From Blastocladiella emersonii ATCC 22665 (taxonomy: Eukaryota; Fungi; Blastocladiomycota): DNA of 64,000 nt. A model generated the notes under the pieces. It saw only the letters and a program-made list of their open reading frames with translations. It had not been told where the DNA came from and made no database searches. The stretch spans positions 1-64,000 of the forward strand of contig JANHCV010000007.1 in NCBI GenBank assembly GCA_025594325.1, in the 5' to 3' direction. Position 1 is the first letter of the stretch. The number at the start of each line of letters is the position of its first letter. Made by a program: the position numbers and the translations under genes. Shown one piece after another: positions 1-33,034 of this stretch.

Positions 1-445
1 CACAAGCACCAAGCTAGGGTGGCCGGGCGGCCATGGAACGTACTGCATGGGTACCATTACCGTGGACTGGCCGCGGCCATTAATCGCAGCACAGCCCTGC
101 CTGGCTCAGGACGCGGCGGGCGTGGGAGGCGGGTTGGGTAGATAGGTAGCAGCAGCAGCACCTGGCTAGCTGGCTGTCAAACAACACGAGTGAAGGGGTG
201 CGTGAGGGAGGGTGTGTTGAATGAATGGATGGGTGGATGCAAGCAGACCTTCATACGTGTCGTGCGTGATGAGGATTGGTTGGCCACCATCCACCAACGC
301 CATGGCATGGCTGCGGGTGTCGCTGCGTGCGCCTTGGCGGGTGGTGTTGGTGGGTGGTGTTGGTGGTGGGTGCTGTGGTGGTAGTGGAGCTAAAGTGGTG
401 TCGTGGGGCTCTTGGGGTCCCCTTTCCTTCCTGTCTGGCCTAGGT

Positions 446-464
446 GGGTGGGTGGGTGGGTGGG
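446..464 (+). other. G-quadruplex-forming motif GGG(TGGG)4, one per unit (representative copy)
   Basis: Five GGG tracts separated by single T. Fits the G3-N1-7 rule with 1-nt loops. Confidence 0.75.
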
Positions 465-653
465 CGGACGTAGCGCGCATGCGGGCGGGCAAGGTAGGAA
501 CGTTGCTCACGCAATGGATCATGTATTTCATGGAACGTAGTCTGGACAGCAGCAGAGAGGGGGATGTCCGGCCCAACCGGACCCTCCACGAATCACAATA
601 TGCACGCAATGAATTGACCGATGATAGGGCCGTACCAAACCAGCCACGTAGAC

Positions 654-1970
654 AATTGTCATGGTAGTCGAACAAAACCATATTCAAATCTTTGACTACA
701 CGCTTGTCCAGCTAGCCAGGGACCCATAAATCACAGTATCGACCCAACTAAATATTTGACAACAGAAAAATAGTAAACCAACCTCGTACATAATTGTCAT
801 GGTACTCAAACAAAACCATATTCAAAACCTTGACTTCCCGCATGTCCAGCTGGCCAGGGACCCACAAATCACAGTATCGAACCAACAAAGTATCTGACAA
901 CAGAAATATGGTAAAACAGCCACGCGGATAATTGTCATGGTACTCAATCAAAACCATATGTTAATCTTTGCTTTCCTGCATGTCCAGCTGGCCAGGGACC
1001 CAAAAGTCCCAGTATCGAACCAACAAAGTATCTGACAACAGAAATATAGTAAACGATCCACGCAGATCATTGTCGTGGTACTTAATCAAAACCATATTCT
1101 AATCTTTGCTTTCCCGCATGTCAAGCTGGTTGAGGACCCATAAATCGTAAAGTCGAACCAAAAAAATATCTGGCCATAGAAATATAGTAGACCAGCCACT
1201 CTGGCAATTGTCATGGTACTCAAACAAAACCATATTCAAATCTTTGACCTCCCGCATGCCCATGTGGGCAAGGACCTATAGATCAGAGTATCGTACCAAG
1301 AAAATATCTGACCATGGAAATATAGTATACCAGCCACGTAGGTAATTGTCATGGTACTCAAACGAAACCATAGTCAAGTCTTTGACTATTCACATGTCCA
1401 GCTGGTTGAGGACCCATAAATCGTAACGTCAAAGCAACAATATTTCCGACCATGGAAGTATAGTAAACCAGCCACTCTGGCAATTGTCATGGTACTCAAA
1501 CAAAACCATACTCAACTCTATGACTTCCCACATGTCCAGCAGGTTGGACACCCACAAATCACAGTATCAAACCAACAAAATATCTGACCACAGGAGTATA
1601 TATAACCGACCACGTAGGTAATTGTCTTGATACTCAAACAAAACCATATTCAAATCTTTCACTTCCCGCTTGTCCAGCTAGCCAGGGACCCATGAATCAC
1701 AGTATCACAGCAACACAATATCTGACCAAAGAAATATCGTAAACCAGCCACGTAGATAATTGTCATGGTACTCAAACAAAACCATACTCAAATCTTCGAG
1801 CGCCCCATGTCCAGGTGGGCAAGGGCCTATAAATCACAGTATTGAACCAAGGAAATACCTGACTGACGATCGGGATGTATCAAACCTGCCACGCTGATAA
1901 TTGTCATGGTACTCAAACATAACCATACTCAGCCAAATCTTCGCATACCCTCACGTCCAGGTGGGCAAGG
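654..1970. repeat. Block of 138-bp satellite monomers (representative, unit 1)
   Basis: The core AATTGTCATGGTACTCAAACAAAACCATA (or a close variant) starts at 654, 792, 930, 1068, 1206, 1344, 1482, 1620, 1758 (138-bp period) and 1899 (preceding monomer is 141 bp). Sequence between cores is homologous but diverged. Confidence 0.97.
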
Positions 1971-1974
1971 AACC

Positions 1975-2004
1975 AAAGCGCCAGATATTCAAATCTACCG
2001 CTTT
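1975..2004. other. Imperfect stem-loop at the end of the monomer block (one per unit)
   Basis: AAAGCG-cc-AGAT-attcaa-ATCT-ac-CGCTTT: the arm pairs AAAGCG/CGCTTT and AGAT/ATCT are reverse complements. Confidence 0.5.
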
Positions 2005-2973
2005 GTGCACACTCCACTAGCCAACTCTTCGATCCCCTAATTATGGAGCCCGTCGTCAAAGTACACGGTCCAATCAACCAAGTAAACAGCCAACCTGCCA
2101 ACTTGCCTACCTGCTATCCGAACACCCACACCGCCTTGCAAGTCATTGGGGGCCCGCGCTCTCTGGTTGCCGTCCCGGCCAACAAAGGAAGGAATGATGA
2201 GCCCTGGCAGCCTGGCAGCCTGCCACTCTGACAGCTCGACTGACAGCGCCCACCCAGTAGATATTATCTATCTCGTAGGTAGTCTGCGAGGACTTTGTTA
2301 GTCAATACACGACCAGTCTCCTCCTGGCTGCCGGCTCTGCTGTCCACTCCAAGTCCTGCATGATGATGGGCCATGGAGGGTTCAGAGCAGCTCCTCTGTC
2401 TATCCGCGTGAAACCACTCACCCGCTGACGGATGTACACCGCGCACCGTGCAGCGCGCACAGCACACAGCGCCCGACGCACCACGCGGTGCGCACAAGGC
2501 GCAAACGGCCACCCTGGTGTCACACACACTCGCATGAACGGCAGGCATGCAAGGCGTCCCCAACTCAACAATGATTTATCATCCAGGCTTACTACTCGCT
2601 CCAACGGGTGCGCCTGCCTGCCCTCCCAGTGCCGTTGATTGATTGATGGATGGGTGCGCCAGCCCCTATTGCCAGCCAAGTGGCAAGCAACACCACAGCA
2701 CCTGCGTCGCCCTGGCCACCGTACCTTGCAAACTGCGTAGCAGCCGTACTGCTTCACAGGGCTGCAGAGGGCTGGCTGCGGAGGGCTGAGGCGGCAGGGC
2801 TCCTCCTGCAGGAAGGAGACAGTGCTGGCGCCAAGGAGTGCTAGGGACGACAAACTGAATGGTGAATGACCCACACACCACATGCTCCTGGCAGGAGTGC
2901 GTGTGGGCGTGCGGGCTTGTGTCCGTGCGTGCCTGTGTCCGTGCGTGCCTGGATTAGACCTCCATCACAAGCG

Positions 2974-3047
2974 CCAAGTGACCAAGTGACCAAGTGACCA
3001 AGTGACCAAGTGACCAAGTGACCAAGGTGACCAAGTGACCAAGGTGA
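2974..3047. repeat. (CCAAGTGA)n microsatellite with 9-bp CCAAGGTGA variants (one per unit)
   Basis: Pattern 6x8 + 9 + 8 + 9 bp. Unit 9 (25296-25361) has 5x8, which explains its 2627-bp length. Confidence 0.97.
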
Positions 3048-3049
3048 CA

Positions 3050-5684
3050 CACAAGCACCAAGCTAGGGTGGCCGGGCGGCCATGGAACGTACTGCATGGG
3101 TACCATTACCGTGGACTGGCCGCGGCCATTAATCGCAGCACAGCCCTGCCTGGCTCAGGACGCGGCGGGCGTGGGAGGCGGGTTGGGTAGATAGGTAGCA
3201 GCAGCAGCACCTGGCTAGCTGGCTGTCAAACAACACGAGTGAAGGGGTGCGTGAGGGAGGGTGTGTTGAATGAATGGATGGGTGGATGCAAGCAGACCTT
3301 CATACGTGTCGTGCGTGATGAGGATTGGTTGGCCACCATCCACCAACGCCATGGCATGGCTGCGGGTGTCGCTGCGTGCGCCTTGGCGGGTGGTGTTGGT
3401 GGGTGGTGTTGGTGGTGGGTGCTGTGGTGGTAGTGGAGCTAAAGTGGTGTCGTGGGGCTCTTGGGGTCCCCTTTCCTTCCTGTCTGGCCTAGGTGGGTGG
3501 GTGGGTGGGTGGGCGGACGTAGCGCGCATGCGGGCGGGCAAGGTAGGAACGTTGCTCACGCAATGGATCATGTATTTCATGGAACGTAGTCTGGACAGCA
3601 GCAGAGAGGGGGATGTCCGGCCCAACCGGACCCTCCACGAATCACAATATGCACGCAATGAATTGACCGATGATAGGGCCGTACCAAACCAGCCACGTAG
3701 ACAATTGTCATGGTAGTCGAACAAAACCATATTCAAATCTTTGACTACACGCTTGTCCAGCTAGCCAGGGACCCATAAATCACAGTATCGACCCAAAAAA
3801 ATATCTGGCCATAGAAATATAGTAGACCAGCCACTCTGGCAATTGTCATGGTACTCAAACAAAACCATATTCAAATCTTTGACCTCCCGCATGCCCATGT
3901 GGGCAAGGACCTATAGATCAGAGTATCGTACCAAGAAAATATCTGACCATGGAAATATAGTATACCAGCCACGTAGGTAATTGTCACGGCACTCAAACGA
4001 AACCATAGTCAAGTCTTTGACTATTCACATGTCCAGCTGGTTGAGGACCCATAAATCGTAACGTCAAAGCAACAATATTTCCGACCATGGAAGTATAGTA
4101 AACCAGCCACTCTGGCAATTGTCATGGTACTCAAACAAAACCATACTCAACTCTATGACTTCCCACATGTCCAGCAGGTTGGACACCCACAAATCACAGT
4201 ATCAAACCAACAAAATATCTGACCACAGGAGTATATATAACCGACCACGTAGGTAATTGTCTTGATACTCAAACAAAACCATATTCAAATCTTTCACCTC
4301 CCGCTTGTCCAGCTAGCCAGGGACCCATAAATCACAGTATCACAGCAACACAATATCTGACCAAAGAAATATCGTAAACCAGCCACGTAGATAATTGTCA
4401 TGGTACTCAAACAAAACCATACTCAAATCTTCGAGCGCCCCATGTCCAGGTGGGCAAGGGCCTATAAATCACAGTATTGAACCAAGGAAATACCTGACTG
4501 ACGATCGGGATGTATCAAACCTGCCACGCTGATAATTGTCATGGTACTCAAACATAACCATACTCAGCCAAATCTTCGCATACCCTCACGTCCAGGTGGG
4601 CAAGGAACCAAAGCGCCAGATATTCAAATCTACCGCTTTGTGCACACTCCACTAGCCAACTCTTCGATCCCCTAATTATGGAGCCCGTCGTCAAAGTACA
4701 CGGTCCAATCAACCAAGTAAACAGCCAACCTGCCAACTTGCCTACCTGCTATCCGAACACCCACACCGCCTTGCAAGTCATTGGGGGCCCGCGCTCTCTG
4801 GTTGCCGTCCCGGCCAACAAAGGAAGGAATGATGAGCCCTGGCAGCCTGGCAGCCTGCCACTCTGACAGCTCGACTGACAGCGCCCACCCAGTAGATATT
4901 ATCTATCTCGTAGGTAGTCTGCGAGGACTTTGTTAGTCAATACACGACCAGTCTCCTCCTGGCTGCCGGCTCTGCTGTCCACTCCAAGTCCTGCATGATG
5001 ATGGGCCATGGAGGGTTCAGAGCAGCTCCTCTGTCTATCCGCGTGAAACCACTCACCCGCTGACGGATGTACACCGCGCACCGTGCAGCGCGCACAGCAC
5101 ACAGCGCCCGACGCACCACGCGGTGCGCACAAGGCGCAAACGGCCACCCTGGTGTCACACACACTCGCATGAACGGCAGGCATGCAAGGCGTCCCCAACT
5201 CAACAATGATTTATCATCCAGGCTTACTACTCGCTCCAACGGGTGCGCCTGCCTGCCCTCCCAGTGCCGTTGATTGATTGATGGATGGGTGCGCCAGCCC
5301 CTATTGCCAGCCAAGTGGCAAGCAACACCACAGCACCTGCGTCGCCCTGGCCACCGTACCTTGCAAACTGCGTAGCAGCCGTACTGCTTCACAGGGCTGC
5401 AGAGGGCTGGCTGCGGAGGGCTGAGGCGGCAGGGCTCCTCCTGCAGGAAGGAGACAGTGCTGGCGCCAAGGAGTGCTAGGGACGACAAACTGAATGGTGA
5501 ATGACCCACACACCACATGCTCCTGGCAGGAGTGCGTGTGGGCGTGCGGGCTTGTGTCCGTGCGTGCCTGTGTCCGTGCGTGCCTGGATTAGACCTCCAT
5601 CACAAGCGCCAAGTGACCAAGTGACCAAGTGACCAAGTGACCAAGTGACCAAGTGACCAAGGTGACCAAGTGACCAAGGTGACA
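3050..5684. repeat. Unit 2, short type S1 (2635 bp)
   Basis: Monomer 1/monomer 4 fusion at about 3793-3796 (GTATCGACCCAA|AAAAATATCTGGCC), 414 bp lost. Private variant TGTCACGGCACTC in monomer 6. Confidence 0.92.
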
Positions 5685-8600
5685 CACAAGCACCAAGCTA
5701 GGGTGGCCGGGCGGCCATGGAACGTACTGCATGGGTACCATTACCGTGGACTGGCCGCGGCCATTAATCGCAGCACAGCCCTGCCTGGCTCAGGACGCGG
5801 CGGGCGTGGGAGGCGGGTTGGGTAGATAGGTAGCAGCAGCAGCACCTGGCTAGCTGGCTGTCAAACAACACGAGTGAAGGGGTGCGTGAGGGAGGGTGTG
5901 TTGAATGAATGGATGGGTGGATGCAAGCAGACCTTCATACGTGTCGTGCGTGATGAGGATTGGTTGGCCACCATCCACCAACGCCATGGCATGGCTGCGG
6001 GTGTCGCTGCGTGCGCCTTGGCGGGTGGTGTTGGTGGGTGGTGTTGGTGGTGGGTGCTGTGGTGGTAGTGGAGCTAAAGTGGTGTCGTGGGGCTCTTGGG
6101 GTCCCCTTTCCTTCCTGTCTGGCCTAGGTGGGTGGGTGGGTGGGTGGGCGGACGTAGCGCGCATGCGGGCGGGCAAGGTAGGAACGTTGCTCACGCAATG
6201 GATCATGTATTTCATGGAACGTAGTCTGGACAGCAGCAGAGAGGGGGATGTCCGGCCCAACCGGACCCTCCACGAATCACAATATGCACGCAATGAATTG
6301 ACCGATGATAGGGCCGTACCAAACCAGCCACGTAGACAATTGTCATGGTAGTCGAACAAAACCATATTCAAATCTTTGACTACACGCTTGTCCAGCTAGC
6401 CAGGGACCCATAAATCACAGTATCGACCCAACTAAATATTTGACAACAGAAAAATAGTAAACCAACCTCGTACATAATTGTCATGGTACTCAAACAAAAC
6501 CATATTCAAAACCTTGACTTCCCGCATGTCCAGCTGGCCAGGGACCCACAAATCACAGTATCGAACCAACAAAGTATCTGACAACAGAAATATGGTAAAA
6601 CAGCCACGCGGATAATTGTCATGGTACTCAATCAAAACCATATGTTAATCTTTGCTTTCCTGCATGTCCAGCTGGCCAGGGACCCAAAAGTCCCAGTATC
6701 GAACCAACAAAGTATCTGACAACAGAAATATAGTAAACGATCCACGCAGATCATTGTCGTGGTACTTAATCAAAACCATATTCTAATCTTTGCTTTCCCG
6801 CATGTCAAGCTGGTTGAGGACCCATAAATCGTAAAGTCGAACCAAAAAAATATCTGGCCATAGAAATATAGTAGACCAGCCACTCTGGCAATTGTCATGG
6901 TACTCAAACAAAACCATATTCAAATCTTTGACCTCCCGCATGCCCATGTGGGCAAGGACCTATAGATCAGAGTATCGTACCAAGAAAATATCTGACCATG
7001 GAAATATAGTATACCAGCCACGTAGGTAATTGTCATGGCACTCAAACGAAACCATAGTCAAGTCTTTGACTATTCACATGTCCAGCTGGTTGAGGACCCA
7101 TAAATCGTAACGTCAAAGCAACAATATTTCCGACCATGGAAGTATAGTAAACCAGCCACTCTGGCAATTGTCATGGTACTCAAACAAAACCATACTCAAC
7201 TCTATGACTTCCCACATGTCCAGCAGGTTGGACACCCACAAATCACAGTATCAAACCAACAAAATATCTGACCACAGGAGTATATATAACCGACCACGTA
7301 GGTAATTGTCTTGATACTCAAACAAAACCATATTCAAATCTTTCACCTCCCGCTTGTCCAGCTAGCCAGGGACCCATAAATCACAGTATCACAGCAACAC
7401 AATATCTGACCAAAGAAATATCGTAAACCAGCCACGTAGATAATTGTCATGGTACTCAAACAAAACCATACTCAAATCTTCGAGCGCCCCATGTCCAGGT
7501 GGGCAAGGGCCTATAAATCACAGTATTGAACCAAGGAAATACCTGACTGACGATCGGGATGTATCAAACCTGCCACGCTGATAATTGTCATGGTACTCAA
7601 ACATAACCATACTCAGCCAAATCTTCGCATACCCTCACGTCCAGGTGGGCAAGGAACCAAAGCGCCAGATATTCAAATCTACCGCTTTGTGCACACTCCA
7701 CTAGCCAACTCTTCGATCCCCTAATTATGGAGCCCGTCGTCAAAGTACACGGTCCAATCAACCAAGTAAACAGCCAACCTGCCAACTTGCCTACCTGCTA
7801 TCCGAACACCCACACCGCCTTGCAAGTCATTGGGGGCCCGCGCTCTCTGGTTGCCGTCCCGGCCAACAAAGGAAGGAATGATGAGCCCTGGCAGCCTGGC
7901 AGCCTGCCACTCTGACAGCTCGACTGACAGCGCCCACCCAGTAGATATTATCTATCTCGTAGGTAGTCTGCGAGGACTTTGTTAGTCAATACACGACCAG
8001 TCTCCTCCTGGCTGCCGGCTCTGCTGTCCACTCCAAGTCCTGCATGATGATGGGCCATGGAGGGTTCAGAGCAGCTCCTCTGTCTATCCGCGTGAAACCA
8101 CTCACCCGCTGACGGATGTACACCGCGCACCGTGCAGCGCGCACAGCACACAGCGCCCGACGCACCACGCGGTGCGCACAAGGCGCAAACGGCCACCCTG
8201 GTGTCACACACACTCGCATGAACGGCAGGCATGCAAGGCGTCCCCAACTCAACAATGATTTATCATCCAGGCTTACTACTCGCTCCAACGGGTGCGCCTG
8301 CCTGCCCTCCCAGTGCCGTTGATTGATTGATGGATGGGTGCGCCAGCCCCTATTGCCAGCCAAGTGGCAAGCAACACCACAGCACCTGCGTCGCCCTGGC
8401 CACCGTACCTTGCAAACTGCGTAGCAGCCGTACTGCTTCACAGGGCTGCAGAGGGCTGGCTGCGGAGGGCTGAGGCGGCAGGGCTCCTCCTGCAGGAAGG
8501 AGACAGTGCTGGCGCCAAGGAGTGCTAGGGACGACAAACTGAATGGTGAATGACCCACACACCACATGCTCCTGGCAGGAGTGCGTGTGGGCGTGCGGGC

Positions 8601-8733
8601 TTGTGTCCGTGCGTGCCTGTGTCCGTGCGTGCCTGGATTAGACCTCCATCACAAGCGCCAAGTGACCAAGTGACCAAGTGACCAAGTGACCAAGTGACCA
8701 AGTGACCAAGGTGACCAAGTGACCAAGGTGACA
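5685..8733. repeat. Unit 3, long type (3049 bp)
   Basis: Full monomer set, ORF spacing 3049. Confidence 0.92.
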
Positions 8734-11368
8734 CACAAGCACCAAGCTAGGGTGGCCGGGCGGCCATGGAACGTACTGCATGGGTACCATTACCGTGGAC
8801 TGGCCGCGGCCATTAATCGCAGCACAGCCCTGCCTGGCTCAGGACGCGGCGGGCGTGGGAGGCGGGTTGGGTAGATAGGTAGCAGCAGCAGCACCTGGCT
8901 AGCTGGCTGTCAAACAACACGAGTGAAGGGGTGCGTGAGGGAGGGTGTGTTGAATGAATGGATGGGTGGATGCAAGCAGACCTTCATACGTGTCGTGCGT
9001 GATGAGGATTGGTTGGCCACCATCCACCAACGCCATGGCATGGCTGCGGGTGTCGCTGCGTGCGCCTTGGCGGGTGGTGTTGGTGGGTGGTGTTGGTGGT
9101 GGGTGCTGTGGTGGTAGTGGAGCTAAAGTGGTGTCGTGGGGCTCTTGGGGTCCCCTTTCCTTCCTGTCTGGCCTAGGTGGGTGGGTGGGTGGGTGGGCGG
9201 ACGTAGCGCGCATGCGGGCGGGCAAGGTAGGAACGTTGCTCACGCAATGGATCATGTATTTCATGGAACGTAGTCTGGACAGCAGCAGAGAGGGGGATGT
9301 CCGGCCCAACCGGACCCTCCACGAATCACAATATGCACGCAATGAATTGACCGATGATAGGGCCGTACCAAACCAGCCACGTAGACAATTGTCATGGTAG
9401 TCGAACAAAACCATATTCAAATCTTTGACTACACGCTTGTCCAGCTAGCCAGGGACCCATAAATCACAGTATCGACCCAAAAAAATATCTGGCCATAGAA
9501 ATATAGTAGACCAGCCACTCTGGCAATTGTCATGGTACTCAAACAAAACCATATTCAAATCTTTGACCTCCCGCATGCCCATGTGGGCAAGGACCTATAG
9601 ATCAGAGTATCGTACCAAGAAAATATCTGACCATGGAAATATAGTATACCAGCCACGTAGGTAATTGTCACGGCACTCAAACGAAACCATAGTCAAGTCT
9701 TTGACTATTCACATGTCCAGCTGGTTGAGGACCCATAAATCGTAACGTCAAAGCAACAATATTTCCGACCATGGAAGTATAGTAAACCAGCCACTCTGGC
9801 AATTGTCATGGTACTCAAACAAAACCATACTCAACTCTATGACTTCCCACATGTCCAGCAGGTTGGACACCCACAAATCACAGTATCAAACCAACAAAAT
9901 ATCTGACCACAGGAGTATATATAACCGACCACGTAGGTAATTGTCTTGATACTCAAACAAAACCATATTCAAATCTTTCACCTCCCGCTTGTCCAGCTAG
10001 CCAGGGACCCATAAATCACAGTATCACAGCAACACAATATCTGACCAAAGAAATATCGTAAACCAGCCACGTAGATAATTGTCATGGTACTCAAACAAAA
10101 CCATACTCAAATCTTCGAGCGCCCCATGTCCAGGTGGGCAAGGGCCTATAAATCACAGTATTGAACCAAGGAAATACCTGACTGACGATCGGGATGTATC
10201 AAACCTGCCACGCTGATAATTGTCATGGTACTCAAACATAACCATACTCAGCCAAATCTTCGCATACCCTCACGTCCAGGTGGGCAAGGAACCAAAGCGC
10301 CAGATATTCAAATCTACCGCTTTGTGCACACTCCACTAGCCAACTCTTCGATCCCCTAATTATGGAGCCCGTCGTCAAAGTACACGGTCCAATCAACCAA
10401 GTAAACAGCCAACCTGCCAACTTGCCTACCTGCTATCCGAACACCCACACCGCCTTGCAAGTCATTGGGGGCCCGCGCTCTCTGGTTGCCGTCCCGGCCA
10501 ACAAAGGAAGGAATGATGAGCCCTGGCAGCCTGGCAGCCTGCCACTCTGACAGCTCGACTGACAGCGCCCACCCAGTAGATATTATCTATCTCGTAGGTA
10601 GTCTGCGAGGACTTTGTTAGTCAATACACGACCAGTCTCCTCCTGGCTGCCGGCTCTGCTGTCCACTCCAAGTCCTGCATGATGATGGGCCATGGAGGGT
10701 TCAGAGCAGCTCCTCTGTCTATCCGCGTGAAACCACTCACCCGCTGACGGATGTACACCGCGCACCGTGCAGCGCGCACAGCACACAGCGCCCGACGCAC
10801 CACGCGGTGCGCACAAGGCGCAAACGGCCACCCTGGTGTCACACACACTCGCATGAACGGCAGGCATGCAAGGCGTCCCCAACTCAACAATGATTTATCA
10901 TCCAGGCTTACTACTCGCTCCAACGGGTGCGCCTGCCTGCCCTCCCAGTGCCGTTGATTGATTGATGGATGGGTGCGCCAGCCCCTATTGCCAGCCAAGT
11001 GGCAAGCAACACCACAGCACCTGCGTCGCCCTGGCCACCGTACCTTGCAAACTGCGTAGCAGCCGTACTGCTTCACAGGGCTGCAGAGGGCTGGCTGCGG
11101 AGGGCTGAGGCGGCAGGGCTCCTCCTGCAGGAAGGAGACAGTGCTGGCGCCAAGGAGTGCTAGGGACGACAAACTGAATGGTGAATGACCCACACACCAC
11201 ATGCTCCTGGCAGGAGTGCGTGTGGGCGTGCGGGCTTGTGTCCGTGCGTGCCTGTGTCCGTGCGTGCCTGGATTAGACCTCCATCACAAGCGCCAAGTGA
11301 CCAAGTGACCAAGTGACCAAGTGACCAAGTGACCAAGTGACCAAGGTGACCAAGTGACCAAGGTGACA
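8734..11368. repeat. Unit 4, short type S1 (2635 bp)
   Basis: Same M1/M4 fusion and CACGGCACTC variant as unit 2. Confidence 0.92.
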
Positions 11369-17300: not shown

Positions 17301-17466
17301 GCTCCTGGCAGGAGTGCGTGTGGGCGTGCGGGCTTGTGTCCGTGCGTGCCTGTGTCCGTGCGTGCCTGGATTAGACCTCCATCACAAGCGCCAAGTGACC
17401 AAGTGACCAAGTGACCAAGTGACCAAGTGACCAAGTGACCAAGGTGACCAAGTGACCAAGGTGACA
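11369..17466. repeat. Units 5-6, long type (2 x 3049 bp)
   Basis: Full monomer sets, ORF spacing 3049 twice. Confidence 0.92.
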
Positions 17467-20400: not shown

Positions 20401-23400
20401 CCATGGCATGGCTGCGGGTGTCGCTGCGTGCGCCTTGGCGGGTGGTGTTGGTGGGTGGTGTTGGTGGTGGGTGCTGTGGTGGTAGTGGAGCTAAAGTGGT
20501 GTCGTGGGGCTCTTGGGGTCCCCTTTCCTTCCTGTCTGGCCTAGGTGGGTGGGTGGGTGGGTGGGCGGACGTAGCGCGCATGCGGGCGGGCAAGGTAGGA
20601 ACGTTGCTCACGCAATGGATCATGTATTTCATGGAACGTAGTCTGGACAGCAGCAGAGAGGGGGATGTCCGGCCCAACCGGACCCTCCACGAATCACAAT
20701 ATGCACGCAATGAATTGACCGATGATAGGGCCGTACCAAACCAGCCACGTAGACAATTGTCATGGTAGTCGAACAAAACCATATTCAAATCTTTGACTAC
20801 ACGCTTGTCCAGCTAGCCAGGGACCCATAAATCACAGTATCGACCCAACTAAATATTTGACAACAGAAAAATAGTAAACCAACCTCGTACATAATTGTCA
20901 TGGTACTCAAACAAAACCATATTCAAAACCTTGACTTCCCGCATGTCCAGCTGGCCAGGGACCCACAAATCACAGTATCGAACCAACAAAGTATCTGACA
21001 ACAGAAATATGGTAAAACAGCCACGCGGATAATTGTCATGGTACTCAAACGAAACCATAGTCAAGTCTTTGACTATTCACATGTCCAGCTGGTTGAGGAC
21101 CCATAAATCGTAACGTCAAAGCAACAATATTTCCGACCATGGAAGTATAGTAAACCAGCCACTCTGGCAATTGTCATGGTACTCAAACAAAACCATACTC
21201 AACTCTATGACTTCCCACATGTCCAGCAGGTTGGACACCCACAAATCACAGTATCAAACCAACAAAATATCTGACCACAGGAGTATATATAACCGACCAC
21301 GTAGGTAATTGTCTTGATACTCAAACAAAACCATATTCAAATCTTTCACTTCCCGCTTGTCCAGCTAGCCAGGGACCCATGAATCACAGTATCACAGCAA
21401 CACAATATCTGACCAAAGAAATATCGTAAACCAGCCACGTAGATAATTGTCATGGTACTCAAACAAAACCATACTCAAATCTTCGAGCGCCCCATGTCCA
21501 GGTGGGCAAGGGCCTATAAATCACAGTATTGAACCAAGGAAATACCTGACTGACGATCGGGATGTATCAAACCTGCCACGCTGATAATTGTCATGGTACT
21601 CAAACATAACCATACTCAGCCAAATCTTCGCATACCCTCACGTCCAGGTGGGCAAGGAACCAAAGCGCCAGATATTCAAATCTACCGCTTTGTGCACACT
21701 CCACTAGCCAACTCTTCGATCCCCTAATTATGGAGCCCGTCGTCAAAGTACACGGTCCAATCAACCAAGTAAACAGCCAACCTGCCAACTTGCCTACCTG
21801 CTATCCGAACACCCACACCGCCTTGCAAGTCATTGGGGGCCCGCGCTCTCTGGTTGCCGTCCCGGCCAACAAAGGAAGGAATGATGAGCCCTGGCAGCCT
21901 GGCAGCCTGCCACTCTGACAGCTCGACTGACAGCGCCCACCCAGTAGATATTATCTATCTCGTAGGTAGTCTGCGAGGACTTTGTTAGTCAATACACGAC
22001 CAGTCTCCTCCTGGCTGCCGGCTCTGCTGTCCACTCCAAGTCCTGCATGATGATGGGCCATGGAGGGTTCAGAGCAGCTCCTCTGTCTATCCGCGTGAAA
22101 CCACTCACCCGCTGACGGATGTACACCGCGCACCGTGCAGCGCGCACAGCACACAGCGCCCGACGCACCACGCGGTGCGCACAAGGCGCAAACGGCCACC
22201 CTGGTGTCACACACACTCGCATGAACGGCAGGCATGCAAGGCGTCCCCAACTCAACAATGATTTATCATCCAGGCTTACTACTCGCTCCAACGGGTGCGC
22301 CTGCCTGCCCTCCCAGTGCCGTTGATTGATTGATGGATGGGTGCGCCAGCCCCTATTGCCAGCCAAGTGGCAAGCAACACCACAGCACCTGCGTCGCCCT
22401 GGCCACCGTACCTTGCAAACTGCGTAGCAGCCGTACTGCTTCACAGGGCTGCAGAGGGCTGGCTGCGGAGGGCTGAGGCGGCAGGGCTCCTCCTGCAGGA
22501 AGGAGACAGTGCTGGCGCCAAGGAGTGCTAGGGACGACAAACTGAATGGTGAATGACCCACACACCACATGCTCCTGGCAGGAGTGCGTGTGGGCGTGCG
22601 GGCTTGTGTCCGTGCGTGCCTGTGTCCGTGCGTGCCTGGATTAGACCTCCATCACAAGCGCCAAGTGACCAAGTGACCAAGTGACCAAGTGACCAAGTGA
22701 CCAAGTGACCAAGGTGACCAAGTGACCAAGGTGACACACAAGCACCAAGCTAGGGTGGCCGGGCGGCCATGGAACGTACTGCATGGGTACCATTACCGTG
22801 GACTGGCCGCGGCCATTAATCGCAGCACAGCCCTGCCTGGCTCAGGACGCGGCGGGCGTGGGAGGCGGGTTGGGTAGATAGGTAGCAGCAGCAGCACCTG
22901 GCTAGCTGGCTGTCAAACAACACGAGTGAAGGGGTGCGTGAGGGAGGGTGTGTTGAATGAATGGATGGGTGGATGCAAGCAGACCTTCATACGTGTCGTG
23001 CGTGATGAGGATTGGTTGGCCACCATCCACCAACGCCATGGCATGGCTGCGGGTGTCGCTGCGTGCGCCTTGGCGGGTGGTGTTGGTGGGTGGTGTTGGT
23101 GGTGGGTGCTGTGGTGGTAGTGGAGCTAAAGTGGTGTCGTGGGGCTCTTGGGGTCCCCTTTCCTTCCTGTCTGGCCTAGGTGGGTGGGTGGGTGGGTGGG
23201 CGGACGTAGCGCGCATGCGGGCGGGCAAGGTAGGAACGTTGCTCACGCAATGGATCATGTATTTCATGGAACGTAGTCTGGACAGCAGCAGAGAGGGGGA
23301 TGTCCGGCCCAACCGGACCCTCCACGAATCACAATATGCACGCAATGAATTGACCGATGATAGGGCCGTACCAAACCAGCCACGTAGACAATTGTCATGG

Positions 23401-26400
23401 TAGTCGAACAAAACCATATTCAAATCTTTGACTACACGCTTGTCCAGCTAGCCAGGGACCCATAAATCACAGTATCGACCCAACTAAATATTTGACAACA
23501 GAAAAATAGTAAACCAACCTCGTACATAATTGTCATGGTACTCAAACAAAACCATATTCAAAACCTTGACTTCCCGCATGTCCAGCTGGCCAGGGACCCA
23601 CAAATCACAGTATCGAACCAACAAAGTATCTGACAACAGAAATATGGTAAAACAGCCACGCGGATAATTGTCATGGTACTCAAACGAAACCATAGTCAAG
23701 TCTTTGACTATTCACATGTCCAGCTGGTTGAGGACCCATAAATCGTAACGTCAAAGCAACAATATTTCCGACCATGGAAGTATAGTAAACCAGCCACTCT
23801 GGCAATTGTCATGGTACTCAAACAAAACCATACTCAACTCTATGACTTCCCACATGTCCAGCAGGTTGGACACCCACAAATCACAGTATCAAACCAACAA
23901 AATATCTGACCACAGGAGTATATATAACCGACCACGTAGGTAATTGTCTTGATACTCAAACAAAACCATATTCAAATCTTTCACTTCCCGCTTGTCCAGC
24001 TAGCCAGGGACCCATGAATCACAGTATCACAGCAACACAATATCTGACCAAAGAAATATCGTAAACCAGCCACGTAGATAATTGTCATGGTACTCAAACA
24101 AAACCATACTCAAATCTTCGAGCGCCCCATGTCCAGGTGGGCAAGGGCCTATAAATCACAGTATTGAACCAAGGAAATACCTGACTGACGATCGGGATGT
24201 ATCAAACCTGCCACGCTGATAATTGTCATGGTACTCAAACATAACCATACTCAGCCAAATCTTCGCATACCCTCACGTCCAGGTGGGCAAGGAACCAAAG
24301 CGCCAGATATTCAAATCTACCGCTTTGTGCACACTCCACTAGCCAACTCTTCGATCCCCTAATTATGGAGCCCGTCGTCAAAGTACACGGTCCAATCAAC
24401 CAAGTAAACAGCCAACCTGCCAACTTGCCTACCTGCTATCCGAACACCCACACCGCCTTGCAAGTCATTGGGGGCCCGCGCTCTCTGGTTGCCGTCCCGG
24501 CCAACAAAGGAAGGAATGATGAGCCCTGGCAGCCTGGCAGCCTGCCACTCTGACAGCTCGACTGACAGCGCCCACCCAGTAGATATTATCTATCTCGTAG
24601 GTAGTCTGCGAGGACTTTGTTAGTCAATACACGACCAGTCTCCTCCTGGCTGCCGGCTCTGCTGTCCACTCCAAGTCCTGCATGATGATGGGCCATGGAG
24701 GGTTCAGAGCAGCTCCTCTGTCTATCCGCGTGAAACCACTCACCCGCTGACGGATGTACACCGCGCACCGTGCAGCGCGCACAGCACACAGCGCCCGACG
24801 CACCACGCGGTGCGCACAAGGCGCAAACGGCCACCCTGGTGTCACACACACTCGCATGAACGGCAGGCATGCAAGGCGTCCCCAACTCAACAATGATTTA
24901 TCATCCAGGCTTACTACTCGCTCCAACGGGTGCGCCTGCCTGCCCTCCCAGTGCCGTTGATTGATTGATGGATGGGTGCGCCAGCCCCTATTGCCAGCCA
25001 AGTGGCAAGCAACACCACAGCACCTGCGTCGCCCTGGCCACCGTACCTTGCAAACTGCGTAGCAGCCGTACTGCTTCACAGGGCTGCAGAGGGCTGGCTG
25101 CGGAGGGCTGAGGCGGCAGGGCTCCTCCTGCAGGAAGGAGACAGTGCTGGCGCCAAGGAGTGCTAGGGACGACAAACTGAATGGTGAATGACCCACACAC
25201 CACATGCTCCTGGCAGGAGTGCGTGTGGGCGTGCGGGCTTGTGTCCGTGCGTGCCTGTGTCCGTGCGTGCCTGGATTAGACCTCCATCACAAGCGCCAAG
25301 TGACCAAGTGACCAAGTGACCAAGTGACCAAGTGACCAAGGTGACCAAGTGACCAAGGTGACACACAAGCACCAAGCTAGGGTGGCCGGGCGGCCATGGA
25401 ACGTACTGCATGGGTACCATTACCGTGGACTGGCCGCGGCCATTAATCGCAGCACAGCCCTGCCTGGCTCAGGACGCGGCGGGCGTGGGAGGCGGGTTGG
25501 GTAGATAGGTAGCAGCAGCAGCACCTGGCTAGCTGGCTGTCAAACAACACGAGTGAAGGGGTGCGTGAGGGAGGGTGTGTTGAATGAATGGATGGGTGGA
25601 TGCAAGCAGACCTTCATACGTGTCGTGCGTGATGAGGATTGGTTGGCCACCATCCACCAACGCCATGGCATGGCTGCGGGTGTCGCTGCGTGCGCCTTGG
25701 CGGGTGGTGTTGGTGGGTGGTGTTGGTGGTGGGTGCTGTGGTGGTAGTGGAGCTAAAGTGGTGTCGTGGGGCTCTTGGGGTCCCCTTTCCTTCCTGTCTG
25801 GCCTAGGTGGGTGGGTGGGTGGGTGGGCGGACGTAGCGCGCATGCGGGCGGGCAAGGTAGGAACGTTGCTCACGCAATGGATCATGTATTTCATGGAACG
25901 TAGTCTGGACAGCAGCAGAGAGGGGGATGTCCGGCCCAACCGGACCCTCCACGAATCACAATATGCACGCAATGAATTGACCGATGATAGGGCCGTACCA
26001 AACCAGCCACGTAGACAATTGTCATGGTAGTCGAACAAAACCATATTCAAATCTTTGACTACACGCTTGTCCAGCTAGCCAGGGACCCATAAATCACAGT
26101 ATCGACCCAACTAAATATTTGACAACAGAAAAATAGTAAACCAACCTCGTACATAATTGTCATGGTACTCAAACAAAACCATATTCAAAACCTTGACTTC
26201 CCGCATGTCCAGCTGGCCAGGGACCCACAAATCACAGTATCGAACCAACAAAGTATCTGACAACAGAAATATGGTAAAACAGCCACGCGGATAATTGTCA
26301 TGGTACTCAAACGAAACCATAGTCAAGTCTTTGACTATTCACATGTCCAGCTGGTTGAGGACCCATAAATCGTAACGTCAAAGCAACAATATTTCCGACC

Positions 26401-29400
26401 ATGGAAGTATAGTAAACCAGCCACTCTGGCAATTGTCATGGTACTCAAACAAAACCATACTCAACTCTATGACTTCCCACATGTCCAGCAGGTTGGACAC
26501 CCACAAATCACAGTATCAAACCAACAAAATATCTGACCACAGGAGTATATATAACCGACCACGTAGGTAATTGTCTTGATACTCAAACAAAACCATATTC
26601 AAATCTTTCACTTCCCGCTTGTCCAGCTAGCCAGGGACCCATGAATCACAGTATCACAGCAACACAATATCTGACCAAAGAAATATCGTAAACCAGCCAC
26701 GTAGATAATTGTCATGGTACTCAAACAAAACCATACTCAAATCTTCGAGCGCCCCATGTCCAGGTGGGCAAGGGCCTATAAATCACAGTATTGAACCAAG
26801 GAAATACCTGACTGACGATCGGGATGTATCAAACCTGCCACGCTGATAATTGTCATGGTACTCAAACATAACCATACTCAGCCAAATCTTCGCATACCCT
26901 CACGTCCAGGTGGGCAAGGAACCAAAGCGCCAGATATTCAAATCTACCGCTTTGTGCACACTCCACTAGCCAACTCTTCGATCCCCTAATTATGGAGCCC
27001 GTCGTCAAAGTACACGGTCCAATCAACCAAGTAAACAGCCAACCTGCCAACTTGCCTACCTGCTATCCGAACACCCACACCGCCTTGCAAGTCATTGGGG
27101 GCCCGCGCTCTCTGGTTGCCGTCCCGGCCAACAAAGGAAGGAATGATGAGCCCTGGCAGCCTGGCAGCCTGCCACTCTGACAGCTCGACTGACAGCGCCC
27201 ACCCAGTAGATATTATCTATCTCGTAGGTAGTCTGCGAGGACTTTGTTAGTCAATACACGACCAGTCTCCTCCTGGCTGCCGGCTCTGCTGTCCACTCCA
27301 AGTCCTGCATGATGATGGGCCATGGAGGGTTCAGAGCAGCTCCTCTGTCTATCCGCGTGAAACCACTCACCCGCTGACGGATGTACACCGCGCACCGTGC
27401 AGCGCGCACAGCACACAGCGCCCGACGCACCACGCGGTGCGCACAAGGCGCAAACGGCCACCCTGGTGTCACACACACTCGCATGAACGGCAGGCATGCA
27501 AGGCGTCCCCAACTCAACAATGATTTATCATCCAGGCTTACTACTCGCTCCAACGGGTGCGCCTGCCTGCCCTCCCAGTGCCGTTGATTGATTGATGGAT
27601 GGGTGCGCCAGCCCCTATTGCCAGCCAAGTGGCAAGCAACACCACAGCACCTGCGTCGCCCTGGCCACCGTACCTTGCAAACTGCGTAGCAGCCGTACTG
27701 CTTCACAGGGCTGCAGAGGGCTGGCTGCGGAGGGCTGAGGCGGCAGGGCTCCTCCTGCAGGAAGGAGACAGTGCTGGCGCCAAGGAGTGCTAGGGACGAC
27801 AAACTGAATGGTGAATGACCCACACACCACATGCTCCTGGCAGGAGTGCGTGTGGGCGTGCGGGCTTGTGTCCGTGCGTGCCTGTGTCCGTGCGTGCCTG
27901 GATTAGACCTCCATCACAAGCGCCAAGTGACCAAGTGACCAAGTGACCAAGTGACCAAGTGACCAAGTGACCAAGGTGACCAAGTGACCAAGGTGACACA
28001 CAAGCACCAAGCTAGGGTGGCCGGGCGGCCATGGAACGTACTGCATGGGTACCATTACCGTGGACTGGCCGCGGCCATTAATCGCAGCACAGCCCTGCCT
28101 GGCTCAGGACGCGGCGGGCGTGGGAGGCGGGTTGGGTAGATAGGTAGCAGCAGCAGCACCTGGCTAGCTGGCTGTCAAACAACACGAGTGAAGGGGTGCG
28201 TGAGGGAGGGTGTGTTGAATGAATGGATGGGTGGATGCAAGCAGACCTTCATACGTGTCGTGCGTGATGAGGATTGGTTGGCCACCATCCACCAACGCCA
28301 TGGCATGGCTGCGGGTGTCGCTGCGTGCGCCTTGGCGGGTGGTGTTGGTGGGTGGTGTTGGTGGTGGGTGCTGTGGTGGTAGTGGAGCTAAAGTGGTGTC
28401 GTGGGGCTCTTGGGGTCCCCTTTCCTTCCTGTCTGGCCTAGGTGGGTGGGTGGGTGGGTGGGCGGACGTAGCGCGCATGCGGGCGGGCAAGGTAGGAACG
28501 TTGCTCACGCAATGGATCATGTATTTCATGGAACGTAGTCTGGACAGCAGCAGAGAGGGGGATGTCCGGCCCAACCGGACCCTCCACGAATCACAATATG
28601 CACGCAATGAATTGACCGATGATAGGGCCGTACCAAACCAGCCACGTAGACAATTGTCATGGTAGTCGAACAAAACCATATTCAAATCTTTGACTACACG
28701 CTTGTCCAGCTAGCCAGGGACCCATAAATCACAGTATCGACCCAACTAAATATTTGACAACAGAAAAATAGTAAACCAACCTCGTACATAATTGTCATGG
28801 TACTCAAACAAAACCATATTCAAAACCTTGACTTCCCGCATGTCCAGCTGGCCAGGGACCCACAAATCACAGTATCGAACCAACAAAGTATCTGACAACA
28901 GAAATATGGTAAAACAGCCACGCGGATAATTGTCATGGTACTCAAACGAAACCATAGTCAAGTCTTTGACTATTCACATGTCCAGCTGGTTGAGGACCCA
29001 TAAATCGTAACGTCAAAGCAACAATATTTCCGACCATGGAAGTATAGTAAACCAGCCACTCTGGCAATTGTCATGGTACTCAAACAAAACCATACTCAAC
29101 TCTATGACTTCCCACATGTCCAGCAGGTTGGACACCCACAAATCACAGTATCAAACCAACAAAATATCTGACCACAGGAGTATATATAACCGACCACGTA
29201 GGTAATTGTCTTGATACTCAAACAAAACCATATTCAAATCTTTCACTTCCCGCTTGTCCAGCTAGCCAGGGACCCATGAATCACAGTATCACAGCAACAC
29301 AATATCTGACCAAAGAAATATCGTAAACCAGCCACGTAGATAATTGTCATGGTACTCAAACAAAACCATACTCAAATCTTCGAGCGCCCCATGTCCAGGT

Positions 29401-30633
29401 GGGCAAGGGCCTATAAATCACAGTATTGAACCAAGGAAATACCTGACTGACGATCGGGATGTATCAAACCTGCCACGCTGATAATTGTCATGGTACTCAA
29501 ACATAACCATACTCAGCCAAATCTTCGCATACCCTCACGTCCAGGTGGGCAAGGAACCAAAGCGCCAGATATTCAAATCTACCGCTTTGTGCACACTCCA
29601 CTAGCCAACTCTTCGATCCCCTAATTATGGAGCCCGTCGTCAAAGTACACGGTCCAATCAACCAAGTAAACAGCCAACCTGCCAACTTGCCTACCTGCTA
29701 TCCGAACACCCACACCGCCTTGCAAGTCATTGGGGGCCCGCGCTCTCTGGTTGCCGTCCCGGCCAACAAAGGAAGGAATGATGAGCCCTGGCAGCCTGGC
29801 AGCCTGCCACTCTGACAGCTCGACTGACAGCGCCCACCCAGTAGATATTATCTATCTCGTAGGTAGTCTGCGAGGACTTTGTTAGTCAATACACGACCAG
29901 TCTCCTCCTGGCTGCCGGCTCTGCTGTCCACTCCAAGTCCTGCATGATGATGGGCCATGGAGGGTTCAGAGCAGCTCCTCTGTCTATCCGCGTGAAACCA
30001 CTCACCCGCTGACGGATGTACACCGCGCACCGTGCAGCGCGCACAGCACACAGCGCCCGACGCACCACGCGGTGCGCACAAGGCGCAAACGGCCACCCTG
30101 GTGTCACACACACTCGCATGAACGGCAGGCATGCAAGGCGTCCCCAACTCAACAATGATTTATCATCCAGGCTTACTACTCGCTCCAACGGGTGCGCCTG
30201 CCTGCCCTCCCAGTGCCGTTGATTGATTGATGGATGGGTGCGCCAGCCCCTATTGCCAGCCAAGTGGCAAGCAACACCACAGCACCTGCGTCGCCCTGGC
30301 CACCGTACCTTGCAAACTGCGTAGCAGCCGTACTGCTTCACAGGGCTGCAGAGGGCTGGCTGCGGAGGGCTGAGGCGGCAGGGCTCCTCCTGCAGGAAGG
30401 AGACAGTGCTGGCGCCAAGGAGTGCTAGGGACGACAAACTGAATGGTGAATGACCCACACACCACATGCTCCTGGCAGGAGTGCGTGTGGGCGTGCGGGC
30501 TTGTGTCCGTGCGTGCCTGTGTCCGTGCGTGCCTGGATTAGACCTCCATCACAAGCGCCAAGTGACCAAGTGACCAAGTGACCAAGTGACCAAGTGACCA
30601 AGTGACCAAGGTGACCAAGTGACCAAGGTGACA
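17467..30633. repeat. Units 7-11, short type S2 (2635, 2635, 2627, 2635, 2635 bp)
   Basis: Monomer 2 is followed directly by monomer 6 (CCACGCGGAT-AATTGTCATGGTACTCAA-ACGAAACC, junction about 18396-18413), so monomers 3-5 are lost. Confidence 0.92.
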
Positions 30634-32677
30634 CACAAGCACCAAGCTAGGGTGGCCGGGCGGCCATGGAACGTACTGCATGGGTACCATTACCGTGGAC
30701 TGGCCGCGGCCATTAATCGCAGCACAGCCCTGCCTGGCTCAGGACGCGGCGGGCGTGGGAGGCGGGTTGGGTAGATAGGTAGCAGCAGCAGCACCTGGCT
30801 AGCTGGCTGTCAAACAACACGAGTGAAGGGGTGCGTGAGGGAGGGTGTGTTGAATGAATGGATGGGTGGATGCAAGCAGACCTTCATACGTGTCGTGCGT
30901 GATGAGGATTGGTTGGCCACCATCCACCAACGCCATGGCATGGCTGCGGGTGTCGCTGCGTGCGCCTTGGCGGGTGGTGTTGGTGGGTGGTGTTGGTGGT
31001 GGGTGCTGTGGTGGTAGTGGAGCTAAAGTGGTGTCGTGGGGCTCTTGGGGTCCCCTTTCCTTCCTGTCTGGCCTAGGTGGGTGGGTGGGTGGGTGGGCGG
31101 ACGTAGCGCGCATGCGGGCGGGCAAGGTAGGAACGTTGCTCACGCAATGGATCATGTATTTCATGGAACGTAGTCTGGACAGCAGCAGAGAGGGGGATGT
31201 CCGGCCCAACCGGACCCTCCACGAATCACAATATGCACGCAATGAATTGACCGATGATAGGGCCGTACCAAACCAGCCACGTAGACAATTGTCATGGTAG
31301 TCGAACAAAACCATATTCAAATCTTTGACTACACGCTTGTCCAGCTAGCCAGGGACCCATAAATCACAGTATCGACCCAACTAAATATTTGACAACAGAA
31401 AAATAGTAAACCAACCTCGTACATAATTGTCATGGTACTCAAACAAAACCATATTCAAAACCTTGACTTCCCGCATGTCCAGCTGGCCAGGGACCCACAA
31501 ATCACAGTATCGAACCAACAAAGTATCTGACAACAGAAATATGGTAAAACAGCCACGCGGATAATTGTCATGGTACTCAATCAAAACCATATGTTAATCT
31601 TTGCTTTCCTGCATGTCCAGCTGGCCAGGGACCCAAAAGTCCCAGTATCGAACCAACAAAGTATCTGACAACAGAAATATAGTAAACGATCCACGCAGAT
31701 CATTGTCGTGGTACTTAATCAAAACCATATTCTAATCTTTGCTTTCCCGCATGTCAAGCTGGTTGAGGACCCATAAATCGTAAAGTCGAACCAAAAAAAT
31801 ATCTGGCCATAGAAATATAGTAGACCAGCCACTCTGGCAATTGTCATGGTACTCAAACAAAACCATATTCAAATCTTTGACCTCCCGCATGCCCATGTGG
31901 GCAAGGACCTATAGATCAGAGTATCGTACCAAGAAAATATCTGACCATGGAAATATAGTATACCAGCCACGTAGGTAATTGTCATGGCACTCAAACGAAA
32001 CCATAGTCAAGTCTTTGACTATTCACATGTCCAGCTGGTTGAGGACCCATAAATCGTAACGTCAAAGCAACAATATTTCCGACCATGGAAGTATAGTAAA
32101 CCAGCCACTCTGGCAATTGTCATGGTACTCAAACAAAACCATACTCAACTCTATGACTTCCCACATGTCCAGCAGGTTGGACACCCACAAATCACAGTAT
32201 CAAACCAACAAAATATCTGACCACAGGAGTATATATAACCGACCACGTAGGTAATTGTCTTGATACTCAAACAAAACCATATTCAAATCTTTCACCTCCC
32301 GCTTGTCCAGCTAGCCAGGGACCCATAAATCACAGTATCACAGCAACACAATATCTGACCAAAGAAATATCGTAAACCAGCCACGTAGATAATTGTCATG
32401 GTACTCAAACAAAACCATACTCAAATCTTCGAGCGCCCCATGTCCAGGTGGGCAAGGGCCTATAAATCACAGTATTGAACCAAGGAAATACCTGACTGAC
32501 GATCGGGATGTATCAAACCTGCCACGCTGATAATTGTCATGGTACTCAAACATAACCATACTCAGCCAAATCTTCGCATACCCTCACGTCCAGGTGGGCA
32601 AGGAACCAAAGCGCCAGATATTCAAATCTACCGCTTTGTGCACACTCCACTAGCCAACTCTTCGATTCCCTAATTAT
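30634..32677. repeat. Unit 12, long type, truncated at unit position 2044 by the retroelement
   Basis: Full monomer block, then TTCGATTCCCTAATTAT joined to non-array sequence CGTCTTTT instead of GGAGCCCG. Confidence 0.93.
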
Positions 32678-32686
32678 CGTCTTTTA

Positions 32687-32716
32687 TTTTGGAACCTTTG
32701 ATTTATCCCTTCACAG
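32687..32716. repeat. Left copy of a 30-bp imperfect direct repeat flanking the LINE
   Basis: TTTTGGAACCTTTGATTTATCCCTTCACAG, 27/30 identical to 36689-36718. Confidence 0.9.
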
Positions 32717-33034
32717 CGGTTGTAACCTGCAAGCAGAGTATCCACTGTACGACAGGCCCCGGCCTTTTCTGGCAGAGCTGCAATGCAGCAAGGCCTGGAC
32801 CACCCACGTCGAGGAGCAAAGGGGAAGAAGTGAGGGAGGGAGGGAAGATAGGACAAACGGACGGAGCAAAGCAGTCCAGTAGCGTCAAACGAGCAGTAGC
32901 GAGAGAGGGAGCGAATGAACAATAATCGAGACCGAGCAGGGCGACATGCTGGGCTGGCCAGCGAGAGAGCGAGGGCACGCCGGAAAGCCAGTAGCAGTAC
33001 TGTGGCTTTGGCCGTGGCCCGAGAGGAATTCCAG

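Follow-up and report, generated by a model that had tools for sequence, protein, structure and literature searches.

The fungal centromere types described so far are point, small regional, inverted-repeat, transposon-rich and mosaic centromeres. Satellites are never mentioned in a review which names centromeres 43 times, and fungi generally lack the alpha-satellite architecture according to a 2026 methods paper (PMC13682844). Here a satellite array of the fungus Blastocladiella emersonii ATCC 22665 was analysed. The window, that is the whole stretch of DNA under study, comprises the first 64,000 nucleotides of contig JANHCV010000007.1 (C19:1-64000 in a contig of 2,017,170 bp; the other contigs are also given C numbers), and the array fills it from position 1 up to a long interspersed nuclear element (LINE). 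The published assembly of this strain was made with LJA from HiFi reads of 10.5 kb mean length, with use of purge_dups; its authors reported AAACCT as telomere motif and inferred at least six chromosomes from telomere counts, and both centromeres and satellites are absent from the text of the paper (PMC9730499). The assembly possesses 32.65 Mb in 21 contigs with an N50 of 2.02 Mb. No description of this satellite or of any Blastocladiomycota centromere was found in the literature. The analysis indicates that the array in the window is the right part of a single internal array, and that the array family most likely represents regional repeat-based centromeres (probability about 0.6).

In Mucor circinelloides, the centromeres of which were mapped by chromatin immunoprecipitation, the L1-like element Grem-LINE1 is pericentric-specific, is also found at non-telomeric scaffold ends and is "oriented away from the core" on both sides (bioRxiv 10.1101/706580). 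B. emersonii resembles Mucor in being an early-diverging fungus in which one LINE family lies in mirror-image orientation and almost solely beside the centromeres or, in B. emersonii, the candidate arrays. However, the Mucor core is composed of about 200 bp of AT-rich DNA with a 41-bp motif while a satellite array is found here, and the pericentric regions of Mucor are 15-75 kb long and gene-free. Grem-LINE1 is described as pointing away from the core whereas the LINE 3' ends face the array in B. emersonii. Grem ORF2 combines apurinic/apyrimidinic endonuclease, RVT and zf-RVT domains, while the LINE found here has RVT_1 and RNase_H and gave no zf-RVT match; the two elements were compared by description, and the copy in the window is 5'-truncated. 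Elements count as Grem-LINE1 from 30% identity and 50% coverage to the Mucor sequence. Mucor is devoid of CENP-A while B. emersonii encodes at least CENP-C. The parallel had been drawn in the initial annotation of the window; it is apt as regards the pericentric-specific, mirror-oriented elements of Mucor, while the LINE domain set appears to differ and the polarity as described is opposite.

The array shares several features with the alpha-satellite higher-order repeats (HORs) of primates and the CEN180-type satellites of plants, namely near-nucleosomal diverged monomers in multi-kb units more than 99.5% identical, chromosome-specific variants, arrays of up to hundreds of kb, one internal array per chromosome in the four chromosomes resolved, and retroelements at the edges where assemblies break. 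Unlike alpha-satellite, nearly half of the B. emersonii unit is GC-rich and non-monomeric, no CENP-B-box-type function is known, and the array edges are sharp, with genes within 4 kb and no diverged monomeric flank. At the chromosome ends of Drosophila, the non-long-terminal-repeat (non-LTR) elements HeT-A and TART form head-to-tail arrays, and LINEs can be inserted at DNA ends independently of endonuclease. The B. emersonii LINEs are likewise stacked head-to-tail, variably 5'-truncated and joined by the 3' tail to pre-existing DNA which would have primed reverse transcription, but this DNA belongs to a satellite array inside the chromosome, each edge has only one to three copies and no telomere function is implied; the likeness in mechanism is drawn from geometry. 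Macrosatellites such as D4Z4 and DXZ4 occupy one or few loci and often contain an open reading frame (ORF) or promoter. They share with the B. emersonii array kb-sized composite units, internal short repeats, tandem homogenisation and a partly GC-rich composition, whereas about one array per chromosome and no ORF or RNA-family signal were found here.

Organisation of the array and its LINE caps

Positions 1-32,677 form a tandem array of 11 complete and two partial units. The features of the array and its edge in the window are as follows.

1..334, forward strand: partial unit (unit positions 2716-3049), cut by the start of C19; the first anchor lies at 335 and no telomere repeat is present
335..30967, forward strand: eleven complete units (3049/2635/2627 bp), recognised by anchor spacing, with 0-15 substitutions and 414-bp deletions
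6321..7700, forward strand: typical L-unit monomer block with ten 138-bp monomers at 42% GC, the conserved core being AATTGTCATGGTACTCAAACAAAACCATA
7701..9067, forward strand: representative non-monomeric part, 59.5% GC, running on into the first 302 bp of the next unit
30968..32677, forward strand: incomplete last unit of type L (unit positions 1-1710), with 99.9% identity to the interior units
32678..36685, reverse strand: dead LINE copy, 5'-truncated inside the reverse transcriptase (RT), with its A-rich 3' tail (GGTTCCAAAATAAAAGACG) abutting the array
33036..33100, reverse strand: (GAAAA)n microsatellite in the LINE 3' untranslated region, varying in length between copies (matches to other copies break at query 539-569)
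33,162-36,578, reverse strand: LINE ORF of 1138 aa with RVT_1 and RNase_H (Pfam)
36686..36718, reverse strand: second LINE 3' tail, a 34-nt copy directly beside the 5' break of the main LINE

A 40-mer anchor occurs at 335, 3384, 6019 and so on up to 30968, with spacings of 3049 bp, 2635 bp and, once, 2627 bp. These spacings define the length classes L (3049 bp) and S1 and S2 (both 2635 bp), one S2 unit being 8 bp shorter. S1 and S2 arose by separate deletions, each of exactly 414 bp or three 138-bp monomers. The units follow each other in the order L S1 L S1 L L S2 S2 S2(-8 bp) S2 S2 and then the partial L unit. Pairwise, the 11 complete units differ by 0-15 substitutions and by the whole-monomer deletions. 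In each unit, Tandem Repeats Finder detected a 138-bp period of 9.4 or 6.4 copies with 77-79% matches and almost no indels, corresponding to 7-10 diverged monomers per unit. The ten monomers of the L unit are mutually 70-86% identical (mean 77%) while the units are at least 99.5% identical, a divergence pattern of the alpha-satellite type. The monomer block has a GC content of 41.7% against 59.5% in the remainder of the unit. About 1.45 kb of the 3.05-kb L unit (about 48%) is GC-rich, has no 138-bp periodicity and contains the microsatellites (GGCTGCAGAGGGCT)2, (GTGCCTGTGTCCGTGC)3.4 and (CCAAGTGA)9 within 7701..9067; the unit is therefore not composed wholly of head-to-tail monomers as an alpha-satellite HOR would be. 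The array is long, homogeneous and non-coding, and is AT-richer only in the monomer block (42% versus about 60% GC). The array is a composite macrosatellite, each unit enclosing a monomer block, rather than a pure HOR. Unit identity is maintained base for base up to 32,677, with one mismatch in the terminal partial unit, and is lost at 32,678. Since the contig start cuts the array, 32.7 kb is a lower bound for its length.

The initial annotation had described diverged 138-bp monomers inside near-identical 2.6-3.0 kb units, an AT-rich monomer part, and an array ending at 32,677 beside a LINE. Tandem-repeat detection, anchor spacing and unit alignment agree on the first of these, the base composition bears out the second, and the LINE 3' tail begins at 32,678, which makes the end coordinate exact. 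Its comparison with the HOR satellites of animals and plants applies to the divergence between monomers and units but not to the composition of the unit, about half of which is non-monomeric. The third tier of blocks which it proposed dissolves into local clustering of deletion variants, its only instances being an L-S1 pair seen twice and a stretch of five successive S2 units.

A 29-nt core with the pattern ATGGT-N11-ACCAT and a TGTCA (TGACA) site was recognised in every monomer (window 6338-7611). No other stretch is as well conserved across the arrays, in a sample biased by monomer selection. The core matched 94 times in the window and not at all in shuffled sequence, and gave no match in metagenomes. 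A short hairpin of ATGGT-N11-ACCAT was predicted in three of four monomers and is energetically not unusual. Dyad symmetry and non-B DNA were not enriched in the monomers (z from +0.4 to -1.0), and no inverted repeats were found in the unit. The core is a possible protein-binding box, with a fold energy that is not unusual.

The element at the array edge has the properties of a non-LTR retrotransposon, with an RT and RNase H ORF, an A-rich 3' tail, variable 5' truncation and no terminal repeats. Its 3' end reads ...AATAAATCAAAGGTTCC(A)n. No endonuclease domain was seen because all copies examined are 5'-truncated. An endonuclease-less 4-kb element was considered and rejected, since the copy on C4 continues upstream through the RT N-terminus (...LIPK...RPITLMET). 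For the clade of the LINE, a PDB search yielded weak R2-type RT matches only. Copies 93-96% identical to it were found beside arrays on C4, C5, C7, C9, C10, C11, C16, C17, C20 and C21. Array edges across the genome were sampled as short stretches, and all 12 edges examined carry an inward-pointing dead LINE of this one family with the 3' end toward the array, so the LINE boundary noticed in the window is general among them. The inward polarity is independent of array orientation (two-sided sign test, p ~5e-4), and both sides are capped in all four arrays with both sides resolved. With the 3'-end 23-mer of the LINE (up to two mismatches), 16 matches, taken as the young LINE 3' ends, were obtained genome-wide and 12 of them lie within about 10 kb of an array edge.

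The LINE/array junctions were read at single-base resolution. Ten edges show a direct junction between A-tail and array (C19 right, C20 left, C17 left, C16, C4 right, C7 left, C10 left, C11 left, C21 left and C5 right). The junctions lie at unit positions of about 1, 455, 477, 1710, 2042, 2731 and 2995, some of them inside monomers, which shows independent insertions without a specific target site. Site-specific insertion was rejected as the unit positions all differ, and seeding of arrays by 3' transduction was rejected as both relative orientations of LINE and array occur. At the C2 left and C6 edges, the inward LINE is older and 3'-truncated at the junction. It lacks the 3' 1.8-2.0 kb (C2:1,675,998-1,677,213 and C6:1,223,889-1,224,352), and the array begins at LINE position ~1972 or 1772. 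On the C2 edge, the older LINE is itself interrupted by a younger one in opposite sense. The truncation at these edges suggests that arrays may also erode or overwrite their LINE caps. Head-to-tail stacking of LINEs was observed on C20, on C7 and in the window, where the second tail is only 34 nt long and may reflect either stacking or a template switch. No array remnants were found beyond the cap within the window, and on C20 a remnant of 113 bp lies outside the cap. Between the two edges of the array shared by C20 and C19, the LINE copies differ by about 6% while the units, including truncated edge units, differ by about 0.2%, indicating that homogenisation went on up to the caps after the LINEs had been inserted.

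Chromosomal position and genome-wide distribution

The last 300 bp of C20 match the window unit at 100%, and 10 kb of C20 contain L-type 3049-bp units which are 99.84% identical to those of the window in the same orientation. The left edge of the C20 array, at C20:1,790,705, is formed by the tail of a LINE of the same family, and 1.79 Mb of unique DNA lie beyond it. On the basis of this identity, the C20 end and the C19 start are most probably the two sides of one array, of which at least 43.5 kb is assembled and both edges are mapped. Two other partners were tried and rejected. C17 has 4.15-kb units with a built-in LINE fragment and 90-95% identity, and C11 is 90-96% identical with seven monomers and an extra segment of about 740 bp.

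The outer ends of the two contigs resemble chromosome ends. The C20 start is the reverse complement of the C4 and C15 ends at 100%, and the C19 end is the reverse complement of a subterminal region at the C6 start at 99.3%. All terminal sequences shared between outer contig ends read outward, as subtelomeric elements do. One terminal family (C20 start, C4 end and C15 end) shows 100% mutual identity and 80% identity to the C16 end, and a second (C21 start and C5 end) is 99.7% identical with 84% identity to the C3 end. Both families are probably subtelomeric elements, the contigs having ended there before the telomere was reached. Among the contig ends searched, true telomeres of (AAACCT)n were found at the starts of C2 and C11 only; the telomere repeat is TTTAGG and TTAGGG telomeres are absent. 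The LINE-capped left edge on C20, together with the nature of the outer ends, places the array internally, most likely at about 47% of a chromosome of about 3.85 Mb.

The monomer core (29 nt, up to three mismatches) matched 2,226 times in the genome, in all cases on array-bearing contigs among the matches listed. At the density of 2.87 matches per kb seen in the window this corresponds to about 775 kb of array, in agreement with the mapped arrays which sum to 0.75-0.98 Mb. Thirteen contig termini lie in arrays and no contig has two arrays. Four pairs of contigs could be formed from the terminal units:

C2 end and C5 start: 99.7% identity
C6 end and C21 end (reverse complement): 100% identity
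C7 and C4: 98.9% identity
C20 and C19: 99.8% identity

These pairings scaffold at least eight contigs into four chromosomes (C20/C19, C7/C4, C2/C5 and C21/C6), each with a single internal array between megabase arms. Altogether, the genome appears to contain about seven chromosome-specific arrays of one monomer family, of 40 to more than 260 kb each. Identity to the window unit is 90-98% in C17, C10 and C11, about 87-90% in C4/C7 and about 77-80% in C2/C5 and C6/C21, and the monomer order is colinear among the closer arrays. The possibility of C10 being a haplotig of C17 is not supported, as the C10 start is unique in the genome. In each 4.15-kb unit of the C17 array (C17:2,060,300-2,209,773, ~149 kb), positions ~264-578 have given way to about 1.1 kb from an old LINE 3' end, which is 72-79% identical to the young LINE and was co-amplified with the unit, so the association between LINE and array is long-standing. 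C12 (59 kb) and C13 (32 kb) each end in 300 bp which are the exact reverse complement of their first 300 bp, and both are hairpin-like and probably assembly artefacts.

Proposed centromere function and alternative explanations

The internal position, number and composition of the arrays, along with the Mucor parallel, suggest that they may bear CENP-A chromatin and assemble kinetochores. A cupin domain of the CENP-C type (PF11699, 80.6 bits) was found at C16:633010-633261 on the reverse strand in an open frame of 1644 aa, which makes a conventional kinetochore plausible. Should kinetochores form on the arrays, the range of satellite centromeres whose higher-order units are specific to each chromosome would come to include an early-diverging flagellated fungal lineage, through a species which is already a laboratory model, with consequences for the question of an ancestral origin of repeat-based centromeres in opisthokonts. 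The invariant inward LINE caps and the mirror orientation in Mucor offer a tractable case for the interplay of retrotransposons and centromere boundaries.

In-register whole-monomer deletions, near-identical units and local runs of variants occur within the array, and near-identity is presumably maintained by unequal exchange or gene conversion at both monomer and unit level, the unit length variants being generated by 414-bp whole-monomer deletions. In target-primed reverse transcription, the DNA which provides the 3'-OH becomes joined to the 3' tail of the element. With this polarity, the 3' tails lying on the array imply that array DNA would have primed every capping event. The LINE 5' end would then have become attached to the chromosome arm, either as the outer array was lost or as a break was bridged. 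Insertions flanked by array on both sides could be removed through array recombination and those flanked by unique DNA could not; clearing of internal copies in this way would explain the persistence of caps only. Re-insertion into a resident A-tail could give same-sense stacking, and the array-side priming may be sought in outward replication forks or in breakage within arrays. A bolder proposal is that the arrays are CENP-A-bound satellite centromeres whose mirror-image LINE caps, a trait that Mucor shares in principle, record repeated array-primed reverse transcription that sets the boundaries, whether through outward forks or through broken arrays that LINE cDNA connects to the arms. It would provide the first satellite, HOR-like centromeres in the fungal kingdom and make LINEs the elements that define and reset centromere boundaries; this combination is speculative and in its entirety rather unlikely.

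Several observations weigh against the centromere assignment or the route proposed for the caps. The join of C20 and C19 is based on sequence identity and not on spanning reads, the array-bearing termini of C9, C10, C11, C16 and C17 have no partner, and about 12 Mb lie on the array-less contigs C1, C3, C8, C15 and C18. As these contigs are unplaced and the five termini unpaired, exactly one array per chromosome is shown for four chromosomes only. The monomers have no dyad or non-B DNA signature, and ordinary genes resume within 4-7 kb of the array edge with no broad pericentric zone. The uniform inward orientation of the LINEs is not accounted for by simple insertion, and the age order within the LINE stacks differs between C20 and C7.

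The arrays might instead be non-centromeric heterochromatic macrosatellites of the knob or DXZ4 kind with a chance location inside chromosomes, the true centromeres lying elsewhere, for example as short AT-rich or unique regions, or in the unassembled middles of the arrays. The half of the unit that is GC-rich and non-monomeric, unlike classical centromeric satellites, fits this explanation, as do the lack of dyad symmetry and the several large contigs without an array. It is nevertheless rather unlikely, because about seven arrays stand against at least six chromosomes deduced from telomeres (PMC9730499), no contig has two arrays, each of the four resolved chromosomes has one between megabase arms, the array-specific mirror-oriented LINEs parallel the mapped Mucor centromeres, and no other large tandem blocks free of genes were seen, the main assembly breaks being due to the arrays. 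The unit might instead be an amplified functional cassette, such as a 46-codon repeat protein, a non-coding RNA gene or an element like a ribosomal DNA (rDNA) spacer, rather than structural DNA. The strictly conserved length of 138 bp, equal to 46 codons, and minus-strand ORFs of 173 and 193 aa which recur in the units point that way. But the monomer block has 12-25 stops in every frame and no 3-nt periodicity of substitutions was detected in it (p=0.33-0.57), which rules out a coding origin of the monomer. Neither Pfam on the unit ORFs nor Rfam on the array gave a match even at E<=1, no Rfam family reached the gathering threshold and no tRNA gene was found in the array, so an rDNA, spacer or tandem RNA-gene array was rejected for want of a recognisable RNA gene per unit. 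A functional cassette is thus improbable, an unannotated long non-coding RNA being compatible with these results, and the non-coding nature of the array, claimed from the outset, is upheld.

The regularity of the units could be suspected of being produced by the assembly, through collapsed or mis-ordered repeats or a duplicated haplotype: the contig breaks off within the array, the run of five identical S2 units (13 kb) is longer than the 10.5-kb mean HiFi read, and purge_dups was applied. The same architecture, however, recurs at 13 contig termini, where the LINE junctions are unique and the unit variants chromosome-specific, the units are told apart by diagnostic substitutions and by three length classes in defined order, and the unique C10 start speaks against a haplotig. 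An artefact is very unlikely; the existence of the array is not in doubt and doubt is confined to copy number and the gap. The initial annotation had left open whether the array is centromeric, pericentromeric or subtelomeric. A subtelomeric block running from the contig start to an unassembled telomere would account for an array which runs off the C19 start, the window containing no unique DNA to the left of it. It has next to no probability, as C20 ends in the same array at 99.84% identity and has its own LINE-capped left edge with 1.79 Mb of unique DNA beyond, and as in the telomere-bearing contigs C2 and C11 the telomere is at one end and the array at the other, 1.7-2.8 Mb apart. No telomere repeats were found beside any array, so none has the adjacency to a chromosome end that defines a subtelomeric block. 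The centromeric or pericentromeric reading agrees with the internal position and about one array per chromosome, and centromere function itself stays at the level of probability given above. The genome-wide mapping proposed with it returned about seven arrays and not one locus, internal and single in the four chromosomes resolved, with five termini left unpaired.

Genes beyond the cap

Two host genes follow the LINE cap in the window.

36705..38412, reverse strand: TALE-type homeobox-like gene, the first host gene after the cap; its exon pieces were translated apart and not joined
39806..42319, forward strand: DEAD-box helicase gene (DEAD 5e-33, Helicase_C 6.5e-17)

The 520-aa ORF of the TALE-type homeobox-like gene gave no match in Pfam; one of its exon pieces reads RRTLRKTVKE*. 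The 34-nt LINE tail supplies the last four codons of this gene, its TAA stop and the AATAAA signal (window 36686-36949, reverse strand). On C4, about 100-150 bp likewise separate the truncated 5' end of the LINE from the end of a host GRDP-like gene in the same orientation.

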